Virus record (IMG/VR): IMGVR_UViG_3300035181_000357
Coordinates: 1-64,000 of that record
Reading direction: 5' to 3' (one strand)
Length of the DNA: 64,000 nt
Part shown: positions 12,510 through 64,000 of the stretch, one piece after another
Layout of the letters: every line of letters begins with the position of its first letter
Position numbering within the stretch: position 1 is the first letter of the stretch
Position numbers and translations under genes: made by a program
Notes under the pieces: model-generated
What the model saw: only the letters and a program-made list of their open reading frames with translations
Database searches by the model: none
Told to the model about the DNA's origin: nothing

Positions 12510-12525
12510 AACTTCCGGAACAAAA

Positions 12526-12605: not shown

Positions 12606-12615
12606 GAAATCTTGA

Positions 12616-43921: not shown

Positions 43922-44260
43922 TTACTTGACTTCTTTTTCCAGATCAGCTTCTAAAGTAGCTAATTCCCTGATACTCTTCTCGTAATCTGCATCAAGCTTT
44001 GACATCTGCTGTCTGGCTCGAAGGTCCAGATCTAACATTTGTTTGAATAGAGGATCTAGTTCCTGAGGATGTGGTCTCTTAGAAAGAGCTTGAAGCATAG
44101 AAGTTCTATCAGCGATACTCCTCTTAAGATGGACTAGGCCAGATCGTAATGGTATTAAAGCACTTACAATCTGCTGAACTTCCTGGTATCTGGCTACCTT
44201 CTTTTTGAGTTCTCTAGTCTTCTTTTCAGCTTCTCTCTTTAACGCAGCTTCTGTTTTCAT
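43922..44260 (-). CDS. Coiled-coil hypothetical protein
   Basis: 112 aa, heptad-rich. Confidence 0.55.
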   Translation of the reverse strand: MKTEAALKREAEKKTRELKKKVARYQEVQQIVSALIPLRSGLVHLKRSIADRTSMLQALSKRPHPQELDPLFKQMLDLDLRARQQMSKLDADYEKSIRELATLEADLEKEVK

Positions 44261-47589: not shown

Positions 47590-48223
47590 TAAATTCTCCA
47601 GCTCTCAACCTTTGTTCCTTCAATCTCAAGATACTCCGAACCTTACTCAATCCCAGGACTCTTGCACAGGGTAATGGATCGTTAGATTTCTCACCTAGGA
47701 AGTAGAATCGCATAAGTTCCTTTACTAAACCAACCTTGTCTTCAGTCTCTGCAGCGACTAGTTCCGAAACTCGCCTAATATAAAGATCCTTCACATCAGT
47801 GAATTCCAAGAGGATGATATTCTCTTCTTCCACATCCTCTAAGTCGTCTTCCATCTTTGGAAGATTATATTTCTCTTCTAACCATTTAAGGGCTGCAACT
47901 CTTGTGGTGCCCATAAGTCGGGATACTAGTTTAGTATGATCCCAATATTGATCGCCAGGAGGACAACCGTAGCAATACGCGTCGTTAGATCGTTGGTACA
48001 AATGGAAACTTGGATTTGAATCACGTCCGTGAAATGGACATGAAATTGAATCACCTTTCGGAATCTTCCCAGTAACTTCTAGTGCCAGATCTCTGAAATC
48101 AATCAATTCTCTTATACGATCCCATCTCTTCTCAGAGATCTGCTTGTATGAAGAACCTAACAGTAATCTCGCTTCTTCTCTACTAAATTCTACATCCTCA
48201 ATGTCCTTGAAGTCTTCTGACAT
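47582..48223 (-). CDS. Stand-alone CHC2 (DnaG-type) zinc-finger protein
   Basis: CPFH....PSF......YCYGC, no TOPRIM domain. Confidence 0.8.
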   Translation of the reverse strand: MSEDFKDIEDVEFSREEARLLLGSSYKQISEKRWDRIRELIDFRDLALEVTGKIPKGDSISCPFHGRDSNPSFHLYQRSNDAYCYGCPPGDQYWDHTKLVSRLMGTTRVAALKWLEEKYNLPKMEDDLEDVEEENIILLEFTDVKDLYIRRVSELVAAETEDKVGLVKELMRFYFLGEKSNDPLPCARVLGLSKVRSILRLKEQRLRAGEFNV

Positions 48224-48322: not shown

Positions 48323-49144
48323 TTATACCTTACTAGTCTTACGTGTGTAGATCTTCCTCTTGTTGGGGATCTTCTGAAGTCCCTTAGAGTACACACTAGC
48401 CAAGATACGGAGTCTCGACTTGAGTCTATTTAGTTCTTCCATCTTGAGTCCGGCAACTTCACAGATCTCAGACATAGAATTATTCTGCATGAACAAGGTA
48501 GCCGTCTTCAGCGTATCTGGCTCGTTCTTCTTAAGGAATTTCACGAATCCTTTAACGAAGTGGGTAGTATCCATAGAATCTGCAAAATTCAAATCGACCA
48601 AGTGGGAACAGTTGTGTTTGGTGAACAGGTCTTCAAGAGTCACTGTTCCTGGAACATAACTTTCTGCTGATTCTGGAGCATCGAAGGAGATCATCAAGGT
48701 ATTGCGTTGAGTAATCGGCTCTCTGGTTCTCTTTCTGATACAAATCATATACTTTCTAGTAAGTAGAAGATTGATGTAGAAGAAGAATTTTCCAGCAGAT
48801 TTGCCACCAATTCTGTCACCCGAGAATGACATGATTCGATCTTTGATTCCCTTGGCCTGGCCATTTTTAGAGACTGTAAGAATATATTCTACCATATCAT
48901 GGGTGAAATCTTCTAACAGTTCGTTCGGACAGCGGTGTCTGATAAGCCAAGTCTTTATATACTTTGGATATCTGTTATTAAACTCTTCGAAATTCATTGG
49001 AACAACAAAGTCATCATCAACAGACACGACTTCCTTGTAACTGAAATCCGATTTCTTCGTTGCTAAATCCAGTTCCTTCTTATCTTCTTCTGTCATCTCT
49101 TCGTCAAGGATAACATCATTTAGGTCTGACAAGCGTTCCTCCAT
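48323..49144 (-). CDS. Sigma70-family (ECF-like) sigma factor
   Basis: LLEDFTHDM...KFFFYI...Y...IRK region-2-like; SMSEICEVAGL...L.RLKSRL region-4 HTH. Confidence 0.6.
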   Translation of the reverse strand: MEERLSDLNDVILDEEMTEEDKKELDLATKKSDFSYKEVVSVDDDFVVPMNFEEFNNRYPKYIKTWLIRHRCPNELLEDFTHDMVEYILTVSKNGQAKGIKDRIMSFSGDRIGGKSAGKFFFYINLLLTRKYMICIRKRTREPITQRNTLMISFDAPESAESYVPGTVTLEDLFTKHNCSHLVDLNFADSMDTTHFVKGFVKFLKKNEPDTLKTATLFMQNNSMSEICEVAGLKMEELNRLKSRLRILASVYSKGLQKIPNKRKIYTRKTSKV

Positions 49145-49171
49145 GGAGTTTGAAGTTGATACTCCTTGCTC

Positions 49172-49180
49172 ATTATATCA
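49172..49180 (-). promoter_or_regulatory. Extended -10 (TGnTATAAT) host-type promoter upstream of the sigma gene
   Basis: Minus strand TGATATAAT followed by an AAGGAG RBS. Confidence 0.55.
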
Positions 49181-49205
49181 GGGAGAATGAAATTCTAAAC
49201 AATCT

Positions 49206-50078
49206 TTATTTAGTTGGTACTCTCTTAAGCTGACTCTTCTGTTTTAGTTCTTCGAGGAGTCTCTTGTTGGCTTCTTCTAGAGTAGATAGTTTTCCCCTTA
49301 CCTCATCTAGTTCAACCTTCTGAGTTGTAGTCACAGTTTTGTTGGTAGAACTTAACCAACTATTTACTAACAACATCATCATTAATGATGCTAAAATCCC
49401 AATGAAATTAGTCTTTATCTGGGACAAGATCAGGTTGGATAGAATGATTATGGGTTCTTTCTTCTCACCAGTAAGGGGATTAAATCCTCGTTCTTTTAAC
49501 AATTCAGCAATAGCTATTTGTAGTGTAGGTAGTAATCTAAGGACTTCATCGTCTTTCATGTTCTTGAAGAACAGAATTATAGGAGAATGAGCTTGTAACG
49601 CAGTATATATAAGATCGATTTTAGCCATCGCTTCTTTTAACGTGACATCTATTTTTCTTCTATCTGCCATAGCTTCGTCTAATGATGCTTTTATTGCGAC
49701 GAGTTGATTATATATCGTTTTATATGTCCCAGCTACCCCAGATAATATACTTCTATTCTTTCTGGTCTCTTCTATCTGAGTCTCGGATTCAGTTGAAAGA
49801 GTTTCTACCAGTCGTTCGAAGCTATCACTAATACTAGAACAGAACTGGATAATTTGGTTTAGTTTCTCATCACCATCTTCCATATTATCAGACGAATTTT
49901 CTGTATAAGCTGAGAGCATACTCTGCAGTTTCTCCAGAGCCTTCTCCATATCGTTAGTGATTGATAGAATGTCTCTTATGTCTAGATATGCGGCTTCTGT
50001 AGAAGCATAGATCTCCTGAAGATCCTCTTTTACTTCTGAATTTGCAGGGAGAAACCTTCTTCTTCTATCGTCGGCCAT
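49206..50078 (-). CDS. Coiled-coil protein with C-terminal TM helix
   Basis: Long heptads, then FIGILASLMMMLLV. Confidence 0.55.
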   Translation of the reverse strand: MADDRRRRFLPANSEVKEDLQEIYASTEAAYLDIRDILSITNDMEKALEKLQSMLSAYTENSSDNMEDGDEKLNQIIQFCSSISDSFERLVETLSTESETQIEETRKNRSILSGVAGTYKTIYNQLVAIKASLDEAMADRRKIDVTLKEAMAKIDLIYTALQAHSPIILFFKNMKDDEVLRLLPTLQIAIAELLKERGFNPLTGEKKEPIIILSNLILSQIKTNFIGILASLMMMLLVNSWLSSTNKTVTTTQKVELDEVRGKLSTLEEANKRLLEELKQKSQLKRVPTK

Positions 50079-50087
50079 TGTCTCTTC

Positions 50088-50612
50088 TTATAGATGTTGG
50101 GGAACTAGAGATCGTCGGCGGATAATATTCTCTTTACTTTCGCTGGACAGAGAATCCATTCTAACTTTTATTAAAGATTCTAATCGCTCATTTGTTATTT
50201 TTATTTTAGCAATCGAATCTTCTAGAATTTTTGAACTCCTCCGAGGATTGACCTCTACTAAGGGGTTTATAACTTCACTTTTAAAAGGCAGTTCTCTATT
50301 AACAGGAAATATAACATCAAACGTTATCTTCTCATTCTTGAAATCTCTGCTGAACTGCCATAAAACATCCCCACCTTCCATGACATACACTTTCTCTTTG
50401 TCATCTAGGAGGGGATCATCATTTACATAAGATAATATCAATTCTTGGTCAGCAATCTTACATCTTGAATTTTTAAACAGAATCTTTGGGACACCACCAT
50501 CGTCGGCGATGACTACGATTGGAAACGGAACAGAATTTATGATCTCGATTAGGGAAGCTATAGGATCCTTGAGCCTCAGAATTTCTGTTGTTCGATGTCG
50601 TAACCTAAGCAT
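50088..50612 (-). CDS. Hypothetical protein with PAS-like N-terminus
   Basis: IINSVPFPIVVIADDG..KILFKN resembles the start of a PAS domain. Confidence 0.35.
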   Translation of the reverse strand: MLRLRHRTTEILRLKDPIASLIEIINSVPFPIVVIADDGGVPKILFKNSRCKIADQELILSYVNDDPLLDDKEKVYVMEGGDVLWQFSRDFKNEKITFDVIFPVNRELPFKSEVINPLVEVNPRRSSKILEDSIAKIKITNERLESLIKVRMDSLSSESKENIIRRRSLVPQHL

Positions 50613-50652
50613 AGTAATAGCCCGTAGATATTCTAATTATAAGGTAGGAAAC

Positions 50653-51108
50653 TTATTTATTACCCTGGAATAGGATTTCTAAAAATGGGAGCTGCGGTAG
50701 GAAAAGAATCCAGCAATAGAAGAGTGTGTTGAAAAACAAAGGGCAAGACATATCCATTCGATATGGGGAATTGTTATCTTTGTATATTTCTGGGACATAT
50801 TCTCCTGGAAACAACTGGGCTTCTAAAGATGACCTCTTTAGGATATATAGACCGACGGTCATCATACCTACTAGAAAGTAGATAGACACTGTCTTCCAAG
50901 ATAATCCGAGATTTAAAAACCATTCTAAGTACAAATGGTCATAATTATAATTAAATATCGAGTATAATACTAAGGCTATCGCGAGTTTAAATGGGGTCTT
51001 AGTCCAGAAGGGTTCTTTATTATTCTCAGACATACCCAACTTGTTATGTCTAGTGATTAGAAATGTAAATGACGAGGCTATAGATATGGCTATAAAAGCG
51101 TTTATCAT
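50653..51108 (-). CDS. Multi-pass membrane protein
   Basis: Three to four hydrophobic segments in 151 aa. Confidence 0.55.
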   Translation of the reverse strand: MINAFIAISIASSFTFLITRHNKLGMSENNKEPFWTKTPFKLAIALVLYSIFNYNYDHLYLEWFLNLGLSWKTVSIYFLVGMMTVGLYILKRSSLEAQLFPGEYVPEIYKDNNSPYRMDMSCPLFFNTLFYCWILFLPQLPFLEILFQGNK

Positions 51109-51135
51109 TGAAATGCTCCTACATCTTATTACGTG

Positions 51136-52992
51136 TTAGAAGCGACGACCAGCCAACCTACCAGGACGACCTGGGACATCCTCTCGAGTCATGGCCTTTA
51201 TTCTCTCAGACATCCTATAATTTGATAATGAAGATACTTCAGGATCGAAGTCAAGCCCATGTAGTAAAGGATCTATATTATTACCAGAAATAATATCATC
51301 CATTTTATTAGGTTCATCTTTCATAAATTGGTTAGCTAGATATGCAACTAACGCTACGACATCACACATGTCATCGTGGGCACCCTTTTCATTGGGAGCC
51401 TGTACTCTAATCTGGTACTTACTGACTATGGTGGCTTCTACAGATTTTATTTCTTTCTCGAAAATAGGAACATCTGGGAACCTGATTGTACCTTGATCGA
51501 TGAATCCCTTAAGTGTATAATACATTTGAGAATTGATACCAGTATTTAAATGTACCAATTCAAAATTCTCAATATCATTCATCTTCAAAAGCTGGGTGAG
51601 CATAGACCCACCATGTTGGTCAGTACAACCCTTATAACAAGGCAGAACAGAATTAAGCCCGATCATCCAGTTGAGGATATCCTCTAAAGGAATCTCTGTA
51701 ACATGTTCATATGGAGCCTCACCAACCATCTTGCGGCCGATATAATCATAGTATAATTGAATCCCAACACCATCAACATATTCAAGATGCCCAATAGCTA
51801 GAGCCGTGGCATCGTGTTTCATACCAAGATCTAGTGCCCAGAAGTACAGCTTTGAAAATTTCTCTTCTTGATATCTAACAGTATTCTCTCGTCCTCTATC
51901 TATAGCTCGTTCAATAGATAGAACAGGTACGTAAGATTCAGCAGAGTCTAGAAACTGTCCACCATACTCAGCTTTCCAGGTTAGGGAAGCAGATATGGCC
52001 TTCTTTCTCAGGTATTCAGAGTTAGAACGAGGGTTCATCTCAGCAGATGAACACATGAGGGTAAAAATTCCAGAATCTGGGCCATGTTTCATAGCCTCGG
52101 CATGAAGATCGTAGGCTTTACCTTCACGCTTCCATGGGCTGGTAATGGTTAAGATCAGAGATTCTAATAATCCTGTCTCAGTACTGGTGAAGTTCATGGT
52201 AGCTGGAGCTGCTGCTTCATATACTTCATCAGAGTTTGAACCCTTCTCATTCCTGAAGTGAGCAAACTCGTCTAGTGCCAAGAAATATGAGCTGGGACCA
52301 CGTACAGCATTCGTGGTACAAGGCCAGGCACCTATCTTAATAGATGGGATAACATCACGTTTGTCTTTATCAGCTTCAGTTACGAACTCCATGCTCTTAG
52401 ATCCCGGAGTCTTTCTAAGGTATGGACTAAAGAATGGACAGGAGTTAATGTCTGATTTAAATTTATCGTATAGACGGTTAGCACCAGAATTATCTTGTGC
52501 CAGGAAAGTGAATTCTATTGGAGAACCTTCAACCAGACCGAAATGTTCATGAGGAGATCGTATAGATAGAAGTTTATATAGTTTGAAATCTGCGATAGCA
52601 GATACTAACTGGGATTTACCACCACGTCGGCCAGCAAAGATAACAGCTTCGTTGAATCCTCGTTCTGGGAGATCTTGCCAATCTTCTACGTTTATTCTAC
52701 CTTCACTATATAGATAATCTAGATATTCTCGTTCAGTAAAGGTGTAGAGAACTTCTTCTGCGAACTTATCTTTTACAATTATGGTCCCCTCTTTATAATC
52801 CAGGGGAACTCCCAAGATGCACTTGTATATAAATCTTTGAACTGGATATAGAGTTACCTTTGGTCCAGAATCCCCTTCTAAAAAATCTATACCATTTAAT
52901 ATATTAGAATTAACAGATATTTCACTATCTACGATTTGACCTAAGATTGATGATCTAGCCTGATGAGAAAATTTATTAATCTTTACTGCCAT
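51136..52992 (-). CDS. Terminase large subunit
   Basis: Walker A AGRRGGKS, Walker B LALDEF, ITSP coupling motif, nuclease WALDLG...DATA and HDD..D. Confidence 0.9.
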   Translation of the reverse strand: MAVKINKFSHQARSSILGQIVDSEISVNSNILNGIDFLEGDSGPKVTLYPVQRFIYKCILGVPLDYKEGTIIVKDKFAEEVLYTFTEREYLDYLYSEGRINVEDWQDLPERGFNEAVIFAGRRGGKSQLVSAIADFKLYKLLSIRSPHEHFGLVEGSPIEFTFLAQDNSGANRLYDKFKSDINSCPFFSPYLRKTPGSKSMEFVTEADKDKRDVIPSIKIGAWPCTTNAVRGPSSYFLALDEFAHFRNEKGSNSDEVYEAAAPATMNFTSTETGLLESLILTITSPWKREGKAYDLHAEAMKHGPDSGIFTLMCSSAEMNPRSNSEYLRKKAISASLTWKAEYGGQFLDSAESYVPVLSIERAIDRGRENTVRYQEEKFSKLYFWALDLGMKHDATALAIGHLEYVDGVGIQLYYDYIGRKMVGEAPYEHVTEIPLEDILNWMIGLNSVLPCYKGCTDQHGGSMLTQLLKMNDIENFELVHLNTGINSQMYYTLKGFIDQGTIRFPDVPIFEKEIKSVEATIVSKYQIRVQAPNEKGAHDDMCDVVALVAYLANQFMKDEPNKMDDIISGNNIDPLLHGLDFDPEVSSLSNYRMSERIKAMTREDVPGRPGRLAGRRF

Positions 52993-53190
52993 TCTCTTCT
53001 CTCCACTTAGCCCATCGTTTTATTTGAATGACATCCGACATCTTTTTCTTAGACTCTTCTGAATGTTTCTTTCCTAGATTGGCATCTCGTAATTTCTGTC
53101 TAGTATCTACAGATGGATTTTTCTTAGATTCTGACATCTTTTTCTAGCTTCCTCGGACCATATTCTAGTTCTATTGAGTGTGGTGTTATT
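52976..53190 (-). pseudogene. Frameshifted NUMOD3-type homing-endonuclease DNA-binding remnant
   Basis: Reads WSEEARK[-1]MSESKK...LGKKHSEESKKKMSD; residual 53-aa ORF 52976..53137; no catalytic domain. Confidence 0.7.
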
Positions 53191-53193
53191 ACT

Positions 53194-53964
53194 TTAGCTG
53201 CCATGGGTCACATCTACTACCTTTATCTGGTCTTTTACTGAATTCCAGTATTTCATCAGACTATCAGAATTTACATCTTTTATACTATCTGGGTGATTCC
53301 ATACCCAAGGTATGATATATAGCTTAGTAGGCCATATCACTCCATCTGAAGTAATAGCTGACGGCATCGTCTCTATCAACTGAATAGTTAGAGAATCTGG
53401 AATGATTTCGTCTTCTATGGCTTTTTTAGCATACCATACTAAGTCATCATAGAACACGGACTTCTTTTCGAACAGACCCTGCAGAATCGAATGAAATTTA
53501 TAATCTTTTATATTCTGATCCAAGGTGTCAATCAACCGTCTTACTAATGCTCTGTTCTTAGCGACCTCTTTACGAAAAGTCAGAGGTGTGGTATTGTGTA
53601 CATCGCTGACTACACCCTCATCCATGTCATAATAGCATAGTATGATATCTGCTATAGAATCTTCATCCATAGTCAAGTCATTAAATGCAGAACCTGGTAT
53701 TTCAAAGATATACAGATTATCATCATCTATAACCTGAGATATCCTGGTTACAGAGTATGACAGAGCCTGCTTAATAGAATTAGCAAAGTATATTCTGCCC
53801 TTTTGAGGCTCCATTTGCCCAGCTTCAAAGGAAATATCCTTAGATTTTAATCCTTCTTTTAGGATATTATCTGCAGCCTCTTTAGTAGTCCCGTGCCACC
53901 AGGTCCTAGATTTTATATTAGGAGTTGGAGATACAGCGATTCTTCTGGTGAAGAGTCTGGACAT
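53194..53964 (-). CDS. ADP-ribosyltransferase-fold protein
   Basis: WWHGT....I..EGL ... GRIYFANS...A..Y ... YIFEI ... DED, the H-Y-(E) ART pattern. Confidence 0.55.
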   Translation of the reverse strand: MSRLFTRRIAVSPTPNIKSRTWWHGTTKEAADNILKEGLKSKDISFEAGQMEPQKGRIYFANSIKQALSYSVTRISQVIDDDNLYIFEIPGSAFNDLTMDEDSIADIILCYYDMDEGVVSDVHNTTPLTFRKEVAKNRALVRRLIDTLDQNIKDYKFHSILQGLFEKKSVFYDDLVWYAKKAIEDEIIPDSLTIQLIETMPSAITSDGVIWPTKLYIIPWVWNHPDSIKDVNSDSLMKYWNSVKDQIKVVDVTHGS

Positions 53965-53969
53965 ACATT

Positions 53970-56588
53970 CTAATCTTTCTTCTTGATGATGTACTTGACC
54001 TTTAAAGTCATAGTCTCTATATCGAGTTTCTCAGCACGAACAAATACTTCATATGTGAATCCAGCATCGCCTTCATCATTCCATACAGCAGCTTGTGCCC
54101 AGGCACCATTCAATGCATCAATCATATCAGTATCATTTAGACCATCAGCGAGGGCCTTGAAGCCAAAACCAGTCTGATCAACGGGGAGTATTCCAGCATT
54201 AGCTAGCAGAAGACCAGTCTCTAGATCGTTGAGTCTGAGAGTCCATTCCATTGGAGTGTCAGTGAATAATGGCTTTTGTGTAACCTGGAATCCAGAAACT
54301 AGAGTGGCAGCAATCTGGCCGCAGATTCTCTTAAGAACATCAGCTAATTTTACTTTGTTCTCTGCTGAAGCAGTCTTCGAAGCCTTTTTAGAAGCCATCA
54401 ATAGCGAACTAGGATTGATATCATCATGTGGGGCATTAAACATGTTGGTGAATCCAGGACCACGGAGGTTGAGTTCCTTACGTAGAGGAGCACCTTGTGG
54501 TTGACTTGGTCCGAGACCCATACCTGCTGGACCCTTTGTAGCATCACCTTCATCGGTCTTCTCTAACTGCATCTGTAACATTTCAGGTGTTGGAGAATGG
54601 GTGAATTCTCTTCCAACTGGTTGAATAGCAAGCTGTTCTGCCATTTCAGGATAGAAACCTTCTAGAACCTGACCAGGAACCATCAACGTGAAAGCTTTCT
54701 TCTCCAGGAATGATTCTTTCTTATCTACAGGAGGATCAGACCATGCTTCAAATCTCCTAAAGTTGTTCTTGTCAGAAAGCCCCTTGGTGAACTTCTCTCT
54801 TGCCTTTTCTGTCGAGAACGTACGTTCTTTGTTTACGACCTGATCCTTTTTATTAAATTCAGACCATTGAACCCCCCAATTACCATCAGCAGAGGCTGTT
54901 ACAGGTTTCTTTTCTTCCTCTTCCTCATGTTGGAACCAATCATCAGCTGACATTGGTAGTTCTTCTCTCAAAATCTCTTCAGAAGAAGCTTCTTTTAACA
55001 GTCCATGCATTTGTGCATACTCGATTGCAGATCCAAGCCAATCATTAGGGTTTAGATATCCGTCTTCGACGAGTTCTCCAACTTCTTCATCAGACCAGGA
55101 AGCAATCTCGGTGTCACCCTTATACAGGGTTACTTGAGCACGATCTCTCTCAAACCAGGTATCAACTCTGTATTCATCAGAGTCAGCAGATTCTACTCTC
55201 TTCAACTCGTCCTTCTGATCTTCGCCTTCAGCGAACTGATCTTCATCAGTTCCTTCTTCTAAGACATCTACTAGCTTCTTGTGTTCTTCTATGAATTCAT
55301 CAGCTGGCATTTCAACCACGATCTTAGCACCATGATCATCAGCAAGAGTTAGAGCTCCAGGAAGACCCTTTACCTGAGCAATCTCATCAGAGGCTGAAGG
55401 CATGTTGGAGTAATAATCCTGGATGATGTGTTGTACATCGAGAGAACCATTCTTGCCACCCGACAGGATCCAATCCTCTAAGGTTAGGAGATCATTCTGC
55501 ATCTTCTCGTAACGAGGTCCTTGACTCTCGTCTCCAGACTTATCCATCTTTCTAAGTTCTACTCTCAGATACTTGGTCACCATCTTTGCATCAGCTTCTA
55601 CATCATCAGATGCTTTCTTTGGATCTGGACCATCAACCATCTCTGGTCCAACAGTTTCCTTAGATCCTGGGGCACCATAATCTGGACGATTACGAAGGCC
55701 AGTTTCAGCAGATATTTTAGTCTTAGTATCTAAGATATCTTCAATCTTACTGAATAGCTTAAGTTCTTCTGGCTCCATGATACTCTCTTCGAGTTCTTCG
55801 ATGTGAGCAGCGGATAATCTGATCTTCTTTCTCTGAACTTCAGCTTTTACCAAGGAAGAAGCGATGAGTCTGAATGTGGTCTTAATTTTAAGATCCTTAA
55901 GTGCATCTTTTCCGATCGACTTGCCTTCTCCTAGACTGACCTTAATGTCCTCAGCTTCCACCTCAGATCCTTTACCAAGTTCTGGGTAAGCGTTGCCATA
56001 ACTAGGAGTCTTAAAGACATGCTGTTGAAGTGGGATAGATTCCACACGGAATGCACCAGTCAAGGCTTTGATCTGTTCGAAAGAGTTTGATAAGGCTGGG
56101 TTATACATGGCACAGAATACCTTGTCTCTAAGGTCTAGGAACAGGGTGTCTTCGTTGAAGTGGATGACCTTAATATCTGAGATATTTGCCCAAGCTGGAT
56201 GGAAGACTACTAAATCACATACTTCACCATTGGAATTGGTGAATAACATTTCTTTAGCCATCTTTAAAGTGTCTTTTGACATATCTTCAGAGGCTAGAAA
56301 CTGTAGTCTGGCTTCAATGGCTTCTTCCTGATTTAAGGAAGAGAATACACCAGAAGCTAGGAGAGCGATTGGGAAGTTTTCTGCTTTCTTACATACAGAG
56401 GCTGGTACTACATAGATATCACCAATAACGATATCTTCTCTATATGATTTTTTGCAGATCTCTAACTTAGCTACATTTCCTTTGTTAGCTTCTTTAGCAC
56501 CCTGAGTCTTGATAGCCTCAGCTACCTGGGCGATCATCTCGTCAGGTGCAGTGAAAGAAAGATATGATCTATATGCCTTAGTTGCCAT
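53970..56588 (-). CDS. Large acidic mosaic head/internal protein
   Basis: 872 aa of discrete segments separated by KKAS, KISA, LKEAS, VTASA, EKKAF and KKASKTASA. Confidence 0.55.
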   Translation of the reverse strand: MATKAYRSYLSFTAPDEMIAQVAEAIKTQGAKEANKGNVAKLEICKKSYREDIVIGDIYVVPASVCKKAENFPIALLASGVFSSLNQEEAIEARLQFLASEDMSKDTLKMAKEMLFTNSNGEVCDLVVFHPAWANISDIKVIHFNEDTLFLDLRDKVFCAMYNPALSNSFEQIKALTGAFRVESIPLQQHVFKTPSYGNAYPELGKGSEVEAEDIKVSLGEGKSIGKDALKDLKIKTTFRLIASSLVKAEVQRKKIRLSAAHIEELEESIMEPEELKLFSKIEDILDTKTKISAETGLRNRPDYGAPGSKETVGPEMVDGPDPKKASDDVEADAKMVTKYLRVELRKMDKSGDESQGPRYEKMQNDLLTLEDWILSGGKNGSLDVQHIIQDYYSNMPSASDEIAQVKGLPGALTLADDHGAKIVVEMPADEFIEEHKKLVDVLEEGTDEDQFAEGEDQKDELKRVESADSDEYRVDTWFERDRAQVTLYKGDTEIASWSDEEVGELVEDGYLNPNDWLGSAIEYAQMHGLLKEASSEEILREELPMSADDWFQHEEEEEKKPVTASADGNWGVQWSEFNKKDQVVNKERTFSTEKAREKFTKGLSDKNNFRRFEAWSDPPVDKKESFLEKKAFTLMVPGQVLEGFYPEMAEQLAIQPVGREFTHSPTPEMLQMQLEKTDEGDATKGPAGMGLGPSQPQGAPLRKELNLRGPGFTNMFNAPHDDINPSSLLMASKKASKTASAENKVKLADVLKRICGQIAATLVSGFQVTQKPLFTDTPMEWTLRLNDLETGLLLANAGILPVDQTGFGFKALADGLNDTDMIDALNGAWAQAAVWNDEGDAGFTYEVFVRAEKLDIETMTLKVKYIIKKKD

Positions 56589-56599
56589 CTTGTCTCCAA

Positions 56600-57088
56600 T
56601 TAATTTGTAATTTCTACTTTTTCTACTTCTCTTCTTAGTTCTGGTTCTCTTATAGCCATCATATCTCTGAATGCTCTAAGAATTTCGTTTGCCTTGTCTT
56701 CAGTATACCCAGATTGAATAATGGACTTTTTCATCATCGTTACTATTTCTCGTACAGCATACTGGAACTTTGGTCCATCGAAGTTTAGGACATCTCGTCT
56801 AGCTAACAGATCGTTATCTTGAAGGGTTTTACTAAGTTCTCTTAAGGCCTTTACCTGTGCTTCTCTTGTCTTCAGGCTGACTTGAGCCAGTGGGCTAGCT
56901 GCAATACCAGAGATCTCTCGGATGACATTAGCCATCTCAACAGCGATCATTCTATTAATGAGTGTTAATGGAACGTTGGGATCATCCACCATTTCCATTA
57001 TTTTACTATAGTTTACTGCTCTAGGATCTTTCAATCCATCGACATAAACTTGATCATTCTCATCAAAGGATATTTCAGAAGTTGCCAT
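56600..57088 (-). CDS. Hypothetical helical protein (terminase small subunit candidate)
   Basis: 162 aa, all helical; context only. Confidence 0.35.
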   Translation of the reverse strand: MATSEISFDENDQVYVDGLKDPRAVNYSKIMEMVDDPNVPLTLINRMIAVEMANVIREISGIAASPLAQVSLKTREAQVKALRELSKTLQDNDLLARRDVLNFDGPKFQYAVREIVTMMKKSIIQSGYTEDKANEILRAFRDMMAIREPELRREVEKVEITN

Positions 57089-57091
57089 ATA

Positions 57092-58414
57092 TTACTCTAT
57101 GTCTCCAACGTTCCCATAGGAACCGAGGTCAATGTCATGACCCTTTAATTCCTTGATCTCAACATCGAAATCTTGAAGCTTAGAAGAGTCTAATCCGACT
57201 TGTGTATTTAAGGTGTTTCCATCATAAGAAGGATCGCCGTTGGCAATCTTATTTGATGATACCTTATCTAGACCAGGGAAAGTAAGAAGAGTTCCACCGG
57301 TTAGACCACAATGCATACCATTACGATATGTGCAAGAAGCACATTTCTTGGCACCGACGATGGCATTCTTAGAAGCCAGTTTACCATGTAGGTACTTACA
57401 ATCAACACGATCAAGATTGATCTTTGACCCGGTCTTCTTTAGGTCATCGATATATCTCTTAGCAGCTACTTTAACCTTTAAGGTTCCGAACTTCTCACGA
57501 GCTTCTACGAAAGCAGCCTCAAAGGATTTCCCACTATCAATATCCTGTCTGAAATTATCAGAAGAGATACTATCTTCAGTGAATGTAACCTTGTCTCCAG
57601 CACTTCTGATAGAATATTGCTCATCTTGAGCTCTTGGAGCCTGGACCTGAACCTCATCCTGAACACCATTATGAATATCAGTCATAGCCTTCTTGCTAAC
57701 CTGCTTACCCAACTGGGCTGCTATTTTATTGACAACTTCCTGCAATTCTTTCTTGCTTGCTACGATAGGAAGTTTATAAAGATTACAACGTCCACCAGCA
57801 CAATGGCTGCATGAGTCACAAGCTGATATCTTCTTAACAGAAGCGGCTTTAACTGAACCTTCTCGCTTAATCTTATTGAAGGTTTCGATACAACCCTTAG
57901 AACCAGAACTCTTCATAAAGTGGTTTGGCTCAATGAAAGAAAGACCAACCAGGCCAGCTCTGTCGTTGAGATAATCGGCTGACATAGTCTTATTGAAGAT
58001 AGCCAACTCTGCGAGTTTATTCATCTTGGATTCGATCTTTTCAGGACTAAATCCTAGGTGAAGGAGGTCATCAATTCTCTTCAATACTTCAGAATCTGTT
58101 AACATCTTCTTCTCTAGACCCTCAATACTGGATCCAGACGCAGCCTTTAAAGCAGAGGCTAAGACAGATGTATCATCGTCGATAGCTTTCTCTGCTCGAC
58201 CTTGCCAGTCCTCATGATTGGGGATATTGGTTGCAGTTCTACCAGTGTTGGTGTGGTGACTCTTTCCACCTAACTCTTGTACCAAGTTATCAGATTTATC
58301 CTGAGATATGGCTTTGAATCCATCGCCACTCTTCTTCTCTTCCTTTGTATTTTCATACGAAGGAGCTACATCGTCAAGGATTTGATCTATAATAGATGCG
58401 TAAAATTTTGTCAT
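57092..58414 (-). CDS. Head-region protein with duplicated Cys4 motifs
   Basis: ACDSCSHCAGGRC and KCASCTYRNGMHC repeats. Confidence 0.55.
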   Translation of the reverse strand: MTKFYASIIDQILDDVAPSYENTKEEKKSGDGFKAISQDKSDNLVQELGGKSHHTNTGRTATNIPNHEDWQGRAEKAIDDDTSVLASALKAASGSSIEGLEKKMLTDSEVLKRIDDLLHLGFSPEKIESKMNKLAELAIFNKTMSADYLNDRAGLVGLSFIEPNHFMKSSGSKGCIETFNKIKREGSVKAASVKKISACDSCSHCAGGRCNLYKLPIVASKKELQEVVNKIAAQLGKQVSKKAMTDIHNGVQDEVQVQAPRAQDEQYSIRSAGDKVTFTEDSISSDNFRQDIDSGKSFEAAFVEAREKFGTLKVKVAAKRYIDDLKKTGSKINLDRVDCKYLHGKLASKNAIVGAKKCASCTYRNGMHCGLTGGTLLTFPGLDKVSSNKIANGDPSYDGNTLNTQVGLDSSKLQDFDVEIKELKGHDIDLGSYGNVGDIE

Positions 58415-58424
58415 TTCATATCCC

Positions 58425-58751
58425 TTAATCGTAAAATTCTAAATCGTCTAAAATATGTTTTAAAGAAGATTCAGGATCTCTTGAATCAGCTGCCATGAGA
58501 GTCTCAGAGTTATCTACTTCATTTGCAGAAGTTAAACGCATGATCTTACCTTCTTTTACTTCCCAGAAATCCTTAGAACTTGGGCACTCATATACATTTC
58601 CTGCTACTCTCATCAATCCTAGTCTCTGGATTACCGTATTGGCTGAAGCCATAATAGGTAAAAGGGCATCATGAGCCTCAGATGCCATATCAGACTGTTT
58701 TGGTATAGACAGGGAATGAATACTGGCTTCCACTCTCTTTTTCATTGACAT
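58425..58751 (-). CDS. Hypothetical head-region protein
   Basis: 108 aa, AGGAG RBS. Confidence 0.6.
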   Translation of the reverse strand: MSMKKRVEASIHSLSIPKQSDMASEAHDALLPIMASANTVIQRLGLMRVAGNVYECPSSKDFWEVKEGKIMRLTSANEVDNSETLMAADSRDPESSLKHILDDLEFYD

Positions 58752-58815
58752 CCTAACTCCTAAATCTACAGATATAAGTCATCATAATAGGTAAGAGAAG
58801 TTATTTACATGTCTG

Positions 58816-59562
58816 TTAATGGTTAGCTCTGGATACCATAATGTGATCGAAAGCTGGATCTTCTACGTCAATGTAGAAGGAACCTAGTAAATCAGGATCT
58901 TCTTTAAACAAGAAACTCATCTTTTCTAGTTTCCGTTTACTGTATCCCTGACCATTAGCACTCGCTTTGTCAATGAGGCCATATATCATTGCACCTAACG
59001 ACAGACTTAGTTCGTCATCCTTATCTAATAGAGCCTTTGAAACCTGCGATAGAACTCTTCGTACATCAGGTCTGTGTACATTGCTCTTCTTGGCTACAAT
59101 GTTAAAACTTCTATACTTTCTATAGTCTTCTATCAGAGTAGAAGTTTTTACACCTTTAAGCACATTCTCTAGTCCATTTGTAGACAGAACAGTACTAATT
59201 AGACCAGAATCAGGATTGGCCCCATATATAATTATGGCCCCAAGCTTCTTGATGGCCATACGAATCTTAAAGCTGCATATTGTTTGAGTGGATCTGTGTA
59301 TCTTTGCCAGGCACCATTGAGGCTTATTGATCATGTAATAACTTAGGAGTAATTCCTGGTCTTCAATCGAGATATTTCTTAAAATCTTTAGAAAATCTGG
59401 AAAATTCTCCTTTATATACATTGAGATATGTTCTTCAATCAAATCATTTTGAGTCTCTAACGAGACTGTTTGATCTTGAAACTTCTCATCACCACTCTCT
59501 TCGTATGCATCTACTGATCGTTTAGAGATTATTGCGTCGAAGTACGGGCTGATTTCGGGCAT
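58816..59562 (-). CDS. Sigma70 region-4-like / tandem HTH regulator
   Basis: LRNISIEDQELL..YY...KPQ..LAK.....Q.......RMAIKKL, plus a second HTH SFNIVAKKSNVHRPDVRR. Confidence 0.6.
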   Translation of the reverse strand: MPEISPYFDAIISKRSVDAYEESGDEKFQDQTVSLETQNDLIEEHISMYIKENFPDFLKILRNISIEDQELLLSYYMINKPQWCLAKIHRSTQTICSFKIRMAIKKLGAIIIYGANPDSGLISTVLSTNGLENVLKGVKTSTLIEDYRKYRSFNIVAKKSNVHRPDVRRVLSQVSKALLDKDDELSLSLGAMIYGLIDKASANGQGYSKRKLEKMSFLFKEDPDLLGSFYIDVEDPAFDHIMVSRANH

Positions 59563-59663
59563 ATAGTTAGTTCCTAACCTGGATAACTACTTTATTCATT
59601 CTAAAACTCCATGTACGCCAACGTTTACACGTTATCATTCACTTTAATTATTACCGATAAATA

Positions 59664-59697
59664 ATAAAAAGTCTCACATTTTAGTGAGACTTTTTAT
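59664..59697. terminator. Bidirectional intrinsic terminator
   Basis: ATAAAAAGTCTCAC-ATTTTA-GTGAGACTTTTTAT. Confidence 0.85.
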
Positions 59698-59714
59698 ATC
59701 CTACTTTTAAAGTT

Positions 59715-62342
59715 TTACTCAGCTACTAATTCAGGAGCTAGTTCAACATCCGATACAAATTCGCTTTCAGAACCTTCTTCAGAATCCTCTAGTTCCACAC
59801 CGAGATTATCGGCTAGATTCTCAACACCCTCAGCGAGATGGTCTAGATTACTATAGATCTCATTTAAGGACAAGCTAACTTCTTCTGGTTCCTCATCGGC
59901 TACACGTCTGAGACCAACAGCAAACTTCTTAGCAATACGCTTCTTAGCAATACGCTTCTTAGCAATACGCTTCTTAGCAATACGCTTCTTAGCTAGTTTG
60001 CCTTCCTTGGCTTCACCTTCTAGAGCCTCTTCCTCTAAGGATTCACCCTCTTCAGGAACAAGATCGTCAGGAGTCAGATTTAGATTCTCAGCAAGAGCAT
60101 CTAGAGCTTCTACCTGTTCCATGAACTTATCACGGAGTTCGGCAATGGCTTCACCTAGAGCTTCTGGCTCTTCCTCAGCAATACGCTTTAAAGTAGCGAA
60201 CTTGGAGGCAGCAGTCTTGGCTTCAGACAAGGCTTCTGCTTTTGCAGCTGCTTCCTTTTTCTTGGCGATAATCTGTGATAATCTTCCCATTGGTTTCTCC
60301 TGTGAACTGGTTACAGCGCTATCTTGCTTTTTAACAGACTTTTCTTCGTCTTCCATCTTGACTAGTTTCTTGGTATAATCGTTGACCAATTTGACCAGCA
60401 GATTGCTCTTATCGATGTTACCTTCTTTAATGAACTTGGTGATGCACTCTCTTAGGTTTACAATGGCCTTCTTGTAATATGAGAATGACTTCTGAGTCTT
60501 AGCTTCGAAATCCTTCCAGATCTCGTCGCTGACTTCATTTGTCAGAGTAGCATCAAAGAGAATAGCTAGATTTGGACCAACTTTCTTACCCATTGTTCTG
60601 GTAAGCCATGGGAAGAATTCAGCCTTGAACTCTTTAAGATCAGAAGAGCTCTCTAACTCAGTGTGGTCGTCAAGAGTTGGCTTGGTATCGAAAATATTAT
60701 AGGTCTCGTCACCAGTTCCAAATTCTGGCTGTACTTCCTGGTTCTTGATCTCAACCTTCTTCTTCTCTTCACCAGTCTCTGGATCGATCTCAACGGTCTT
60801 GTAAACCTTACCATAACCATAGTGTTCTCCGACCCAATCTCTGGCCTTGGATACAGAATAGCTGAACATCTTCTTCAAGAAAGTCGTTACCTGCTTCTCT
60901 AGTGGGTTGTCCTTGTCAGGAGCTCTGTTAGGATCAAACTTTAACAGAGTCTTCAACTGATACAAGTGAGTAATGATCATGTGGTGAGCAGCTTCGTCAC
61001 GCAGATCCTGGTCAGCAATAACCTTCTTGTAGATACTCTCCAAGTATGAACTCCAGTTCATATCCTCATCTACAGGGAGCCCAGCTTCCCTGATAGCAGT
61101 CTTGACATACAAGTCAAAGTCTTTGTTGTAGGAGGTGATCATGAGGTTTGAGAATCTTCTTAAGGTAGAGCCGAGGAGATTTGTTAAACTTGCTAGATGG
61201 GTTTTATTTAAGGTTTCTATTGAGCCGTCAAGATATCTTGCTTGAATTCTGAGATCATCAGTGGTTCGGGCAGCAGCGAGTACGCGGAACGGACGAGAGC
61301 CTGATGGCACCACATAGGACCCAAGCTTAAAGGCCTTCTTTAGACTTGCAATATTGGGTTCCATTGTTTCTAAGAAATTAGAAACTTCTTGGAAGTACTC
61401 TTCTTCATTCTGTGTAGCATTATAATAGGCCGAATCATAATTGTCTAAGTTCTCTTCGAAGTCACCAGCTTGGCCGTATTCTTCATACTTATCAAATGCG
61501 TGTAAGAATTCATATAGTTCAGATAAACCTAATTGGAAATCACTATATTCACTCTCTGTCATATCAAGCCACTGCATTACCTGAGCATCGTCGTTGGCAT
61601 CGATGAAATTCTGCCAGGCTTCACAGTCAGATGTTTCTTCCAAATCCTGAGGTAGATTCTTGACTACCTCTACTGGAATTTCATCCATATCGATATCTAA
61701 TGACATCTGGTGGGATTCTAGATCGAATCCTGGGAATCTCTCCTCGATTTTTCCTACATCATGGGAATTATCATCACAGAAACGGGACCAGGCATTACTC
61801 GTACCACTAATGTCAGTGTTATTCATGACGTCTTCAGCATCATCAAAGGAATGATATTCCTGGCCTGACTCTTCTGCATAATTCTCAAAAGCGGCATTGA
61901 CCAGTACTAATACTTTATTCACTTCTCCGAGAGTGCCCTCTTTAGGTAACTCGTTGAGGAGCATATCCCCTTGCCCATTTCCAGCATAGCCGTTTCCAAC
62001 CCACTGGCCGAATCCACCATTCTGAACCTGATAATGAAGCTTGGCGAGTGCAAACAACATCTTATGGGTATCGGAAGGAAGCTGCTTAAGCATCTCCTGC
62101 ATACTTTTATCACCCATCTGTTGCCAGTTCTTGTGAATCTCGCTGAGGGCCTTCTGAAGATAATCTTCATAGAACCCTGCGAACTTCGCATGAGGATTTA
62201 CAGCCTTAGACGATACAGGCTTCTCACGACCTTCTAGACCACGGTCTACAGAACCATCACTGGTTTCCTTTGCTTTCAGATGCTCGAAAGCTTCCGATGC
62301 AACAACGGTCTTAAATATATCTGCGGATAGTTTGTGACGCAT
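59715..62342 (-). CDS. Multidomain acidic protein: DMP19/DUF4375-like + sigma-like + scaffold-like repeats
   Basis: YQVQNGGFGQWVGNGY...DNYDSAYY; DEAAHHMI...KFDPNR...TTFL; duplicated EEPE..L.E......LA.NL C-terminal helices. Confidence 0.55.
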   Translation of the reverse strand: MRHKLSADIFKTVVASEAFEHLKAKETSDGSVDRGLEGREKPVSSKAVNPHAKFAGFYEDYLQKALSEIHKNWQQMGDKSMQEMLKQLPSDTHKMLFALAKLHYQVQNGGFGQWVGNGYAGNGQGDMLLNELPKEGTLGEVNKVLVLVNAAFENYAEESGQEYHSFDDAEDVMNNTDISGTSNAWSRFCDDNSHDVGKIEERFPGFDLESHQMSLDIDMDEIPVEVVKNLPQDLEETSDCEAWQNFIDANDDAQVMQWLDMTESEYSDFQLGLSELYEFLHAFDKYEEYGQAGDFEENLDNYDSAYYNATQNEEEYFQEVSNFLETMEPNIASLKKAFKLGSYVVPSGSRPFRVLAAARTTDDLRIQARYLDGSIETLNKTHLASLTNLLGSTLRRFSNLMITSYNKDFDLYVKTAIREAGLPVDEDMNWSSYLESIYKKVIADQDLRDEAAHHMIITHLYQLKTLLKFDPNRAPDKDNPLEKQVTTFLKKMFSYSVSKARDWVGEHYGYGKVYKTVEIDPETGEEKKKVEIKNQEVQPEFGTGDETYNIFDTKPTLDDHTELESSSDLKEFKAEFFPWLTRTMGKKVGPNLAILFDATLTNEVSDEIWKDFEAKTQKSFSYYKKAIVNLRECITKFIKEGNIDKSNLLVKLVNDYTKKLVKMEDEEKSVKKQDSAVTSSQEKPMGRLSQIIAKKKEAAAKAEALSEAKTAASKFATLKRIAEEEPEALGEAIAELRDKFMEQVEALDALAENLNLTPDDLVPEEGESLEEEALEGEAKEGKLAKKRIAKKRIAKKRIAKKRIAKKFAVGLRRVADEEPEEVSLSLNEIYSNLDHLAEGVENLADNLGVELEDSEEGSESEFVSDVELAPELVAE
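59926..59993. repeat. Perfect 15-nt coding repeat x4.5 encoding (KKRIA)4
   Basis: TTCTTAGCAATACGC repeated exactly. Confidence 0.95.
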
Positions 62343-62370: not shown

Positions 62371-62568
62371 TTAGTCTAGGATTAGATCGTTTGGATCCCA
62401 AGACTGTTTGTCATCAGAAGATAACACTTCATCTAATACACCTAGAAACTCTTCGTGATCCTTGAAAGCAACATCACTGTGACCTTTGTCAGTAGCAGCA
62501 GTCTTTCCCTGTGCACTAGCATAGAGTCTGTTTAGAATAGTTGCATCTGGTTCTTGAATTTTAGCCAT
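62371..62568 (-). CDS. Small hypothetical head-region protein
   Basis: 65 aa, GGAG RBS, RLYAS/KTAA motifs. Confidence 0.6.
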   Translation of the reverse strand: MAKIQEPDATILNRLYASAQGKTAATDKGHSDVAFKDHEEFLGVLDEVLSSDDKQSWDPNDLILD

Positions 62569-62634
62569 GGTTATTTCTCCGAATAGTTATACCATCAATT
62601 AAAGTTCTGGAAGTCTAAATTGTATTTATTATGA

Positions 62635-63414
62635 CTAATGCGACTTCACAGGAGTTGTTCGTTCTACGACCTTTTCTTCTACCTCTACGGGTTTCTTTAC
62701 TACCTTCTTTTTCTTCTCTGGAACAGGTTTTTCTTCTACAGGCTCTTCCACTTCTTCCACTACTGGTATCTCTTCGATAGGCTCTTCTACAGGAGGGGGT
62801 TGTTCTACTAATTTCTCTTTTACGACAGGCTTGTTAATCTCAACAATTTCGTCGTCATCATCCTCAATAGGTTTGATAGTCGGAACCGTGTCATCATAAC
62901 GCTCTAACGTCTTCTCCACATTCTTATCCTTGAATTTCTCTAACAGCCTCTTTAGAAATGGATTTACTCTATCACTAACGATTTTGAGGTGTTTACAGAT
63001 TACGAACTGGAATCGTCTTGGATCAGTTGGAGCCTGATACTTATCTCGGGGAGTTCCTTCTAATGAGTCTCCTTGACCTAAGTTCCATTGTGCTCCCCAA
63101 TATAAGAAAGCTGGACAGCTACAACTGACTTTAACATCTAGATCTTTGATTGTAGATTTGTCAACAACCTGAGCCGTATCAAATCTGATTAATACAGTGT
63201 GGCCTCTGGGGTCAGAATCTTTCTCTTTGCATTTTACTTTGTATGTTAGTAGCATCTCATCAAGATCTACATTCTTAACAGACATATTACAGTTCTTAGC
63301 CTTAGCTACTGAGAAATCAGAAGTTAGTTGAACCAGATCTTTGATACTAAAAGCCACTTTATACCGGGATTGAGCTACCCAGTCACCGACTTTTGTTGTA
63401 ATCCAGACACTCAT
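62635..63414 (-). CDS. SWIM-type zinc-finger protein
   Basis: VSCSCPAF.YWG......CKH. Confidence 0.75.
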   Translation of the reverse strand: MSVWITTKVGDWVAQSRYKVAFSIKDLVQLTSDFSVAKAKNCNMSVKNVDLDEMLLTYKVKCKEKDSDPRGHTVLIRFDTAQVVDKSTIKDLDVKVSCSCPAFLYWGAQWNLGQGDSLEGTPRDKYQAPTDPRRFQFVICKHLKIVSDRVNPFLKRLLEKFKDKNVEKTLERYDDTVPTIKPIEDDDDEIVEINKPVVKEKLVEQPPPVEEPIEEIPVVEEVEEPVEEKPVPEKKKKVVKKPVEVEEKVVERTTPVKSH

Positions 63415-63431
63415 CTAACCCACCTATTAAA

Positions 63432-63454
63432 TCGGCCTTCATATAGAAGGCCGA
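63432..63454 (-). terminator. Terminator-like hairpin
   Basis: TCGGCCTTC-TATAT-GAAGGCCGA followed by TTT. Confidence 0.6.
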
Positions 63455-63473
63455 AATCCCAAAGCTATCTGAA

Positions 63474-63884
63474 TTACTTCTTCTTTGGGCGACCACCACG
63501 TTTTACGACGGCTTCAGTCTTAGCTTCTTCAGTGGTTTCTGTTTCAACTTCTTCAGTATTTTCGCCAACTTCTTCAACTTCTTCAGTGGTTTCATCTTCA
63601 ACCTCAACGACAGGAACGACGGAATCCACAGCAGGAACGACGACGGTCTCTACAACAACCTCAGGAGTCTTTACAGGCTCTTTAGATGCGGTCTTTAACC
63701 AGCCCTTCTCTTCCATTGAATCAACTGCGACATTTCTAATTTGGAATTGGGTTAGAAGATTATCTTCTCTATATACCACTAGGCTTTCTGTATCGGCATT
63801 GTAGACACAAGTATCTCCAACCTTTGACTGATAGCTGTGGTCCGTGAATGCTACAGAATATGCGAACGTATAAGATTTCATCAT
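63474..63884 (-). CDS. Hypothetical protein with acidic tail ending RGGRPKKK
   Basis: 136 aa, GGAG RBS. Confidence 0.6.
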   Translation of the reverse strand: MMKSYTFAYSVAFTDHSYQSKVGDTCVYNADTESLVVYREDNLLTQFQIRNVAVDSMEEKGWLKTASKEPVKTPEVVVETVVVPAVDSVVPVVEVEDETTEEVEEVGENTEEVETETTEEAKTEAVVKRGGRPKKK

Positions 63885-63944
63885 GGTTACTCCATTTATA
63901 TAATATAATACTCTACACTTATATGTACGTAAGTCATTTAATAT

Positions 63945-63970
63945 AAAAGGCTCTCCGAAGAGAGCCTTTT
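63945..63970. terminator. Bidirectional intrinsic terminator, UUCG loop
   Basis: AAAAGGCTCTC-CGAA-GAGAGCCTTTT. Confidence 0.85.
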
Positions 63971-64000
63971 AAGTTTGCTTAATCAGGGATTAAGGACGAG

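Follow-up and report, generated by a model that had tools for sequence, protein, structure and literature searches.

Three divergent sigma-like modules in a jumbo phage genome, one of them within a head-operon protein

The DNA analysed here is a stretch of 64,000 nucleotides (the window), positions 1-64000 of the IMG/VR virus record IMGVR_UViG_3300035181_000357, a 210,611-bp jumbo phage contig with an estimated completeness of 69%. Nearly all genes in the window lie on the minus strand, including three that an earlier note, made from the DNA letters alone, had singled out as carrying sigma-like modules. These three open reading frames (ORFs), here called P0001, P0002 and P0003, are confirmed at the coordinates given in Table 1, and our analysis supports the presence of three distinct sigma-like modules that are very divergent. 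Scans of the three proteins with Pfam and PHROG matched no sigma family, a scan of the whole contig with Sigma70_r2 (PF04542) gave no match and the only Sigma70_r4_2 match on the contig was a weak one in an unrelated HTH_3 protein. Of 50,697 phage genomes a single one proved to be related, that of Tunturiibacter phage Tunturi_5, a 308.7-kb jumbo myovirus, in which the counterparts of P0001, P0002 and P0003 are gp3, gp346 and gp345, respectively. The contigs that carry this clade measure 200 kb to almost 900 kb, and its single member in culture infects Acidobacteriota. Sigma-like factors of phages are already known, and the present finding is a fresh variant of them.

A sigma-like module within a composite protein

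At the level of predicted fold only, our analysis supports a sigma-2-like domain followed by a sigma-4-like domain in the segment of P0003 at about 60400-61050 (approximately residues 431-647). The model of residues 335-690 has a mean predicted local distance difference test score (pLDDT) of 68, with values of 70-89 in the cores, and a Foldseek-independent aligner run against 48,161 representative chains divides it into three parts. Residues 414-509 match the sigma-2 domains of BldN (6.0), SigH (5.6), AlgU and SigK (both 5.4), and residues 558-643 match the sigma-4 domains of SigL (6.8), Taq sigmaA (6.7), CnrH (6.6), SigF and SigW (both 5.8). The Z values for the two parts are modest (5.6-6.8). 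The majority of the top-ranked matches among the 48,161 chains are sigma factors, and whole-sigma alignments to SigB, to residues 383-612 of sigma-70 and to phage gp79 cover both parts in order. The remaining part, a Tudor-like barrel, finds its best matches in CarD, which is bound to the beta subunit of RNA polymerase (RNAP), and in RapA, PcrA and UvrD, with generic Tudor/SH3 barrels within 1 Z unit of these RNAP binders.

Shape comparison with the ESM Atlas brought up RapA-like clusters and viral sigma-70 clusters, with template modelling (TM) scores below 0.3, and for residues 395-650 phage Sigma70_r2 clusters make up five of the 30 closest language-model clusters (0.92). We also compared profiles with hhalign. 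A profile built from RpoE only gave negative results for all three modules; as P0002 was among these negatives despite its clear sigma-4 fold, we judged that comparison insensitive and repeated it with diverse sigma profiles, to which the hhalign figures given for the modules against sigma refer. Residues 430-507 of P0003 then fall on regions 2.1-2.2 of an RpoS-type profile, with KFDPNR over KFDPERG (single-comparison E 0.016), and the central part of the protein is collinear with P0001 over 196 columns (E 0.02). No Sigma70 match was found in 18 relatives of P0003, the P0003 profile found nothing among PDB sequences, and phmmer and profile searches of PDB sequences with P0001, P0003, A1, A3 and A5 gave nothing useful. 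A complex prediction of E. coli beta-prime residues 215-345 with P0003 residues 394-514 reached a median of 0.29 against a mark of 0.32 and was not used as evidence. The case for the sigma likeness of P0003 thus rests on the convergence of two modelled domains that each pick out sigma factors, their order, the barrel, the Atlas shape search, the language model and hhalign. The earlier note had placed a sigma-2-like and a region-4-like segment inside the 875-residue protein, and the order of the two holds in the predicted fold, but without significance in hidden Markov model (HMM) or Foldseek searches.

The most conserved stretch in the family is the motif NKDFDLYVK..I..AGLPVD..MNW (approximately residues 406-430; 61054-61125), which contains several invariant residues. 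It precedes the sigma-2-like domain and has no counterpart in sigma factors.

The 18 relatives came from a word-indexed search. A profile of the domain alone, run with HMMER against 1.84 billion representatives, retrieved a closed family of 158, of which 146 were found at E <= 1e-10. In almost all 158 members a conserved domain of about 350 amino acids begins within the first 30 residues, with protein lengths from 360 to 1936 amino acids, and the roughly 335 extra residues at the amino-terminus are confined to the clade of the window. The full 875-residue layout is common to five relatives on independent contigs, and the fusion is therefore genuine and not an assembly artefact. Within the amino-terminal extension the match to the DMP19-like family (PF14300) is sub-threshold (21.2 bits, cut-off 25), and five of the 18 relatives match the same model (best E 1.9e-5). 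A further protein, P0011, also carries the family, and in the relative P0151 the match reaches 26.5 bits at a different position in the protein, so that the DMP19 domain recurs in the P0003 family in varying positions. The double repeat at the carboxyl-terminus is conserved family-wide, even where the middle of the protein is replaced. Tunturi_5 gp345 shares 28% identity with P0003 over residues 342-583, and in addition the carboxyl-terminal repeats. P0003 had also been described as a putative virion polyprotein; nothing in its sequence shows one.

Two smaller sigma-like proteins

P0002 belongs to a family of 111 clusters with 42-85% identity, found on contigs of up to 894 kb. Its AlphaFold2 model, built from 55 sequences, has a mean pLDDT of 76.7 and contains a four-helix sigma-4 fold with a helix-turn-helix (HTH), for which Foldseek ranks first the sigma factor from an RNA-guided transcription complex (probability 0.99, E 0.025). 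In the hhalign comparison residues 59-110 fall on the sigma-4 domain of a diverse extracytoplasmic function (ECF) sigma profile (E 8e-4), and 30 of the 55 family members show weak matches to Sigma70_r4_2. A second, winged HTH follows, and the carboxyl-terminal tail is conserved. Neither the model nor the searches revealed a sigma-2 domain, and the first 48 residues are low-confidence helices. The description of P0002 as a region-4, tandem-HTH protein was therefore correct. The Tunturi_5 homologue gp346 (PP885688.1; 11026-11760 in L001) is 47% identical and is labelled 'exonuclease' in GenBank. We found no nuclease fold or family that supports this label for P0002, and since a protein so close to gp346 is modelled with a sigma-4 domain and a second HTH, the label is probably a Phold artefact; on the strength of the model we correct it to sigma-4/HTH protein.

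The same family also matches the antiterminator model Phage_antitermQ (PF06530). These matches occur in 49 of the 55 members and cover only the carboxyl-terminal half of the profile (positions ~57-113 of 118); three relatives exceed the gathering score (26.4-29.0 bits against 26), and P0002 itself has no PF06530 match in the Pfam scan. It is conceivable, as a tentative alternative, that P0002 works as a Q-type antiterminator or as a co-activator resembling gp33 and not as a promoter-recognition module, in which case P0001 would be the only true sigma in the proposed 'cascade'. The lack of a sigma-2 domain would agree with such a role, and the 44-50% identity of P0002 across the clade suits a grip on a conserved polymerase surface. 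However, it is the sigma-4-like half of the Q profile alone that the family matches and its structural matches are sigma-4 domains, while the second HTH suggests that P0002 binds DNA itself. Furthermore, minimal single-HTH sigma factors have been described in RNAP-less jumbo phages by Iyer and colleagues (PMC7824862). We favour a reading of P0002 as a very conserved 'minimal' factor, whose region-4 fold, as in sigma-4, T4 gp33 and lambda Q, would hold the beta-flap and/or DNA.

P0001 is probably an ECF-like sigma, judging from sequence comparisons. Its gene sits between those of the terminase and the primase and DNA polymerase. Language-model features place it at 0.97 to several Sigma70_r2/r4 clusters, and the neighbours of its Atlas model are mostly sigma clusters (TM 0.23-0.34). 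Residues 50-144 fall on the ECF sigma-2 domain in the canonical register (hhalign, single-comparison E 0.011), residues 217-238 fall on the sigma-4 HTH at E 0.22 and weak HTH matches occur where sigma-4 would be expected. Tunturi_5 gp3 is 28% identical and is labelled 'RNA polymerase sigma factor' by Phold. We found five close and three distant relatives, with just three loci contributed by the IMG/VR searches. The proposal of a full ECF-like sigma at this locus is thus probable on the language-model and in-register hhalign results, but no sigma HMM matches the protein.

Genomic setting, promoter-like sites and polymerase genes

Reading along this region, the gene order is head protease, major capsid protein, products of 136, 259 and 65 amino acids, P0003, P0002 and products of 108, 440, 162 and 872 amino acids, and Tunturi_5 and at least 10 distinct IMG/VR contigs show the same arrangement. 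The order common to the contig and Tunturi_5 extends from the tail terminator, sheath, head protease, major capsid protein and small genes to gp345, and continues after it with gp346, gp347-349, gp350, the large terminase (TerL), gp3, primase and DNA polymerase. The products of 108, 440, 162 and 872 amino acids matched no Pfam or PHROG family. P0003 is the last gene of the head operon, and the strong terminator-like hairpin that comes 18 nt past its stop codon belongs to the conserved order and divides it from the gene of P0002; another hairpin with a T-rich tail follows the capsid gene (63944-63971).

The last ~240 residues of the 872-residue protein (53970-56588, minus strand) are 35% identical to the carboxyl-terminus of Tunturi_5 gp350, labelled 'DarB-like antirestriction protein'. 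An analogy with DarB was not upheld, as no methyltransferase or helicase family is detectable in the 872-residue protein. Between this gene and that of the terminase, a 256-residue protein (53194-53964, minus strand) has a weak, sub-cut-off match to PARP/ADP-ribosyltransferases (E 0.0016, 18.4 bits); an ADP-ribosyltransferase here would, by analogy, recall the T4 Alt-type modification of host polymerase.

Table 1. Positions of the genes, domains and sites discussed, in window coordinates
Feature	Nucleotides	Strand	Residues	Remarks
P0001	48323..49144	-		273 aa; probable divergent ECF-like sigma
P0001 sigma-2-like part	48713-48997	-	~50-144	hhalign to ECF sigma-2
P0001 HTH/sigma-4-like part	48374-48598	-	~183-257	
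Promoter-like site upstream of P0001	49172..49199	-		TTTAGA, 16 nt, TG-extended TATAAT
P0002	58816..59562	-		248 aa; no sigma-2 domain
P0002 sigma region-4-like domain	59221-59418	-	49-114	
P0002 second (winged) HTH	58948-59184	-	~127-205	
P0003	59715..62342	-		875-aa multi-domain protein
P0003 DMP19-like (DNA-mimic family) domain	61857..62081	-	88-162	within acidic N-terminal extension, residues 1-334
P0003 Tudor/SH3-like beta-barrel	61182..61340	-	335-387	
P0003 sigma-2-like helical domain	60816..61103	-	414-509	contains 2.1/2.2-like stretch with KFDPNR and TTFL
P0003 linker	60672-60815	-		acidic, low confidence, ~50 residues; joins sigma-2-like to sigma-4-like domain
P0003 sigma-4-like helical domain	60414..60671	-	558-643	
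P0003 C-terminal region	59763..60269	-	~692-860	two helical repeat copies with KKRIA basic repeat between them, then acidic tail
Terminator-like hairpin after P0003	59664..59697	-		14-bp stem, then T-rich tail
Major capsid protein gene	63996-64901			extends past window end
Three small genes	62371..63884	-		136, 259 and 65 aa; between capsid gene and P0003
Conserved downstream genes	53970..58751	-		108, 440, 162 and 872 aa
Large terminase (TerL)	51136-52992			PHROG match
Primase-like protein	47582-48223			PHROG match
DNA polymerase	44257-47589			PHROG match
Portal	41613-43868			PHROG match

Upstream of P0001, where a host-type TGnTATAAT promoter had been proposed, the sequence TGATATAAT is present at 49172-49180 (minus strand), 27 nt before the ATG, with TTTAGA 16 nt further upstream. 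The site exists, but the pattern occurs five times in the window against 4.1 expected and once in 107 upstream regions against 0.6 expected, and with a frequency so close to chance the promoter call does not rise above it. Plain TATAAT is mildly enriched in the 107 upstream regions (16 against 8.6 +/- 2.8), and a scan for sigma-70-type promoters gave 43 sites where 39 were expected. De novo motif discovery in the same 107 regions yielded two small motif sets of four to five sites each and no convincing promoter classes, so that the transcription cascade proposed in the earlier note is not demonstrated.

The first motif, approximately ACCAAGTAATCTAGT, is found 0-65 nt ahead of the start codon in five contig genes beyond the window (92902-93138, minus; 161788-162474, plus; 163124-165271, plus; 166507-166923, plus; 202470-202967, minus) and is a candidate phage promoter or operator. 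The second, approximately CTT.CCTATTATGAT, is placed 11-28 nt ahead of the start codons of the window genes 41613-43868 (portal) and 58425-58751 and of the contig genes 96812-97360 and 185751-186002. The TGATATAAT site of P0001 may be related to this second set instead of being a host-type promoter.

No phage RNAP was detected in the incomplete 210-kb contig: it has no match to PF00562 or PF00623 (Rpb2_6, Rpb1_2) or to the T7-type model PF00940 and no D[FY]DGD-type motif, and the complete Tunturi_5 genome has no Rpb2_6 match. Divergent phage polymerases can escape these models, and the PF00940 search says nothing, since the T7-type control matched nowhere. With no polymerase signature found, dependence on the host polymerase is plausible. 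Sigma homologues are known from jumbo phages that lack an RNAP, among them minimal single-HTH forms and gp33 orthologues (PMC7824862, PMC13282480).

Elsewhere on the contig, a 371-residue protein at 165293-166408 contains a Cro/C1-type HTH_3 domain (E 2.4e-6) and is a further candidate transcription regulator. Downstream of the portal gene the window holds two very large minus-strand ORFs of 1744 (33246-38480) and 1038 (38494-41610) amino acids; the latter has a PKD-like domain, and no other family match was found for either. A 5-nt unit, AAGAG when read on the plus strand and CTCTT on the gene strand, is repeated perfectly in tandem, in 16.8 copies, at the intergenic positions 12524-12607, just upstream of the minus-strand ORF 11520-12509.

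Possible roles and comparison with known systems

Outside T4, little is known about the first minutes in which jumbo phages that lack an RNAP seize host transcription. We consider it reasonably probable that this jumbo phage of the Tunturi_5 lineage, with no RNAP of its own detected, reprogrammes the host enzyme through three phage-specific proteins that belong to the sigma-70 fold or derive from it. Alongside the minimal factor P0002, P0001 would act as a stand-alone two-domain ECF-like sigma, and P0003 would be a composite polymerase-targeting protein that combines the DMP19-like domain, the CarD/RapA-like Tudor barrel, the sigma-2-like domain, the acidic linker, the sigma-4-like domain and the double helical repeat. 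P0003 may clamp the host core polymerase at the sites used by sigma, the beta-prime clamp helices and the beta-flap, and at the beta lobe, and the outcome could be either that a new promoter specificity is supplied or that the host sigma is blocked.

P0003 is probably made late, because its gene stands in the head operon and its sequence changes fast (26-42% identity, where P0002 keeps 44-47% and the capsid protein 71-87%); this placement and rate fit, as circumstantial evidence, a late-made host-interface protein. The protein may also be packaged and injected, and so seize the polymerase at the next infection. The injected proteins T4 Alt and P1 Dar and the virion polymerases are late gene products (PMC5512222), and by analogy the location among head genes hints at putative packaging of P0003, that is, at delivery with the virus particle. 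The label 'virion structural protein' on Tunturi_5 gp345 derives from Phold and not from proteomics; that genome was annotated with Phold and DRAM-v in a paper that contains no virion proteomics (PMC11924767). We regard it as unlikely, on what is at hand, that the P0003 family (158 clusters, apparently all from very large phages) is a virion-packaged, injected sigma-like adaptor acting on host core RNAP. If it were, P0003, with a CarD-like Tudor domain and surrogates of sigma-2 and sigma-4, would start early transcription with neither a virion RNAP nor the host sigma, which would constitute a third strategy beside the virion polymerases of N4 and phiKZ type and the injection of T4 Alt-type enzymes.

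Several observations weigh against the reading in which P0001 and P0003 reprogramme the host enzyme. Neither has a significant HMM link to sigma factors and the hhalign probabilities are low (1-25%). P0001 and its eight relatives have no Pfam or PHROG sigma match even at E 1, the profile search that closed at 158 members never reaches canonical sigmas, and Foldseek of the P0003 model against PDB and BFVD returned nothing at E <= 0.001. In P0003 the 2.2-like helix is followed by no equivalent of region 2.3/2.4; here the alignment is variable and the model consists of a hairpin and a disordered linker. Lacking a recognisable region 2.3/2.4, the sigma-2-like domain could bind polymerase without directing initiation, and the poor sequence conservation of the sigma-4-like part also speaks against a working sigma. 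As the contig is about 69% complete, the part that is absent from it may hold a gene for an RNAP.

The variable hairpin and acidic linker and the poorly conserved sigma-4-like part would equally suit a protein that binds host RNAP as a competitor or inhibitor at the sigma sites, with the DNA-mimic domain helping in host shut-off; P0003 would then be no specificity factor and would have no need of packaging. We find this explanation doubtful. The acidic DMP19-like domain is indeed a recurrent fusion partner, and P0003 evolves fast as host-interface proteins do, but the order of sigma-2-like domain, linker and sigma-4-like domain is kept in the 158 representative clusters, which a pure blocker would not obviously need. 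In addition, the place of the gene in the head operon argues for late synthesis, past the stage at which host shut-off matters, except if P0003 is packaged. That P0003 serves simply as a structural protein of the head or its interior, such as a scaffold-like protein or part of an internal body, with a coincidental resemblance to sigma and with P0001 and P0002 as the only transcription factors, would agree with its head-operon gene, the Phold label, the lack of HMM or Foldseek significance and a complex prediction that gave no verdict, but is quite improbable given two separate domains that each pick out sigmas among the 48,161 chains in the correct order and under whole-sigma alignments, a region 2.1/2.2 motif in register with sigma, five phage Sigma70_r2 clusters among the language-model neighbours, an adjoining amino-terminal barrel whose best matches are RNAP-binding Tudor domains and a conserved neighbour, P0002, that is itself a sigma-4 protein.

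In this clade, it seems, the sigma fold was taken apart and joined anew in three ways. Should P0003 bind polymerase, it would define a new class of polymerase-hijacking proteins and offer a candidate injected sigma-like factor that can be put to the test. A further outcome is the definition of two phage protein families, both widely distributed and uncharacterised. The literature searched gave no description of a head-operon protein in which a sigma-like module is fused to a DNA-mimic domain and a Tudor barrel, and the word 'sigma' is absent from the survey of polyvalent proteins (PMC5512222).

P0001 resembles the ECF (group 4) sigmas and the sigma homologues of RNAP-less jumbo phages in its probable two-domain sigma-2/sigma-4 layout and its size (~200-270 aa), and differs from ECF sigmas in matching no Pfam sigma model. 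A presumed task of steering the host core polymerase to phage promoters is a further likeness (PMC7824862, PMC13282480). The sigma-2, linker, sigma-4 order of ECF sigmas is also seen, in the predicted fold, within P0003. Unlike in those proteins, however, the module is part of an 875-residue chain with a Tudor barrel, a DNA-mimic-like domain and carboxyl-terminal repeats, and has no recognisable region 2.3/2.4. For P0002 the closest parallel is the division of sigma functions among separate small proteins, as in T4 gp55 and gp33 and the 'minimal single-HTH sigma' of group 2 jumbo phages, and its region-4-like module could grip the beta-flap in the manner of T4 gp33. In contrast to gp33 and gp55, to which it has no sequence relation, P0002 has a second HTH and a conserved carboxyl-terminal tail. 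Lambda-type antiterminator Q is a further parallel, as the sigma-4-like HTH half of its profile matches most P0002 relatives, but only that half is matched and mostly below threshold, and neither a Q-binding element nor a pause-site mechanism is in evidence.

The Tudor-like RNAP-interacting domains of the CarD, Mfd-RID, RapA and PcrA/UvrD kind supply the best matches of the P0003 barrel, with generic barrels within 1 Z unit as noted above, and compared with CarD- and RapA-type domains its fusion to a sigma-like module has no example in the literature searched. Finally, P0003 may be set beside the injected takeover proteins, T4 Alt, P1 DarB, the N4 and phiKZ virion RNA polymerases and the 'polyvalent proteins' (PMC5512222). 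Unlike these it carries no enzyme domain, and its putative packaging is hinted at by the conserved gene position. Like them, P0003 is large, multi-domain and fast-evolving, is encoded among virion genes, adjoining a DarB-like gene in Tunturi_5, and has a presumed job in early infection.

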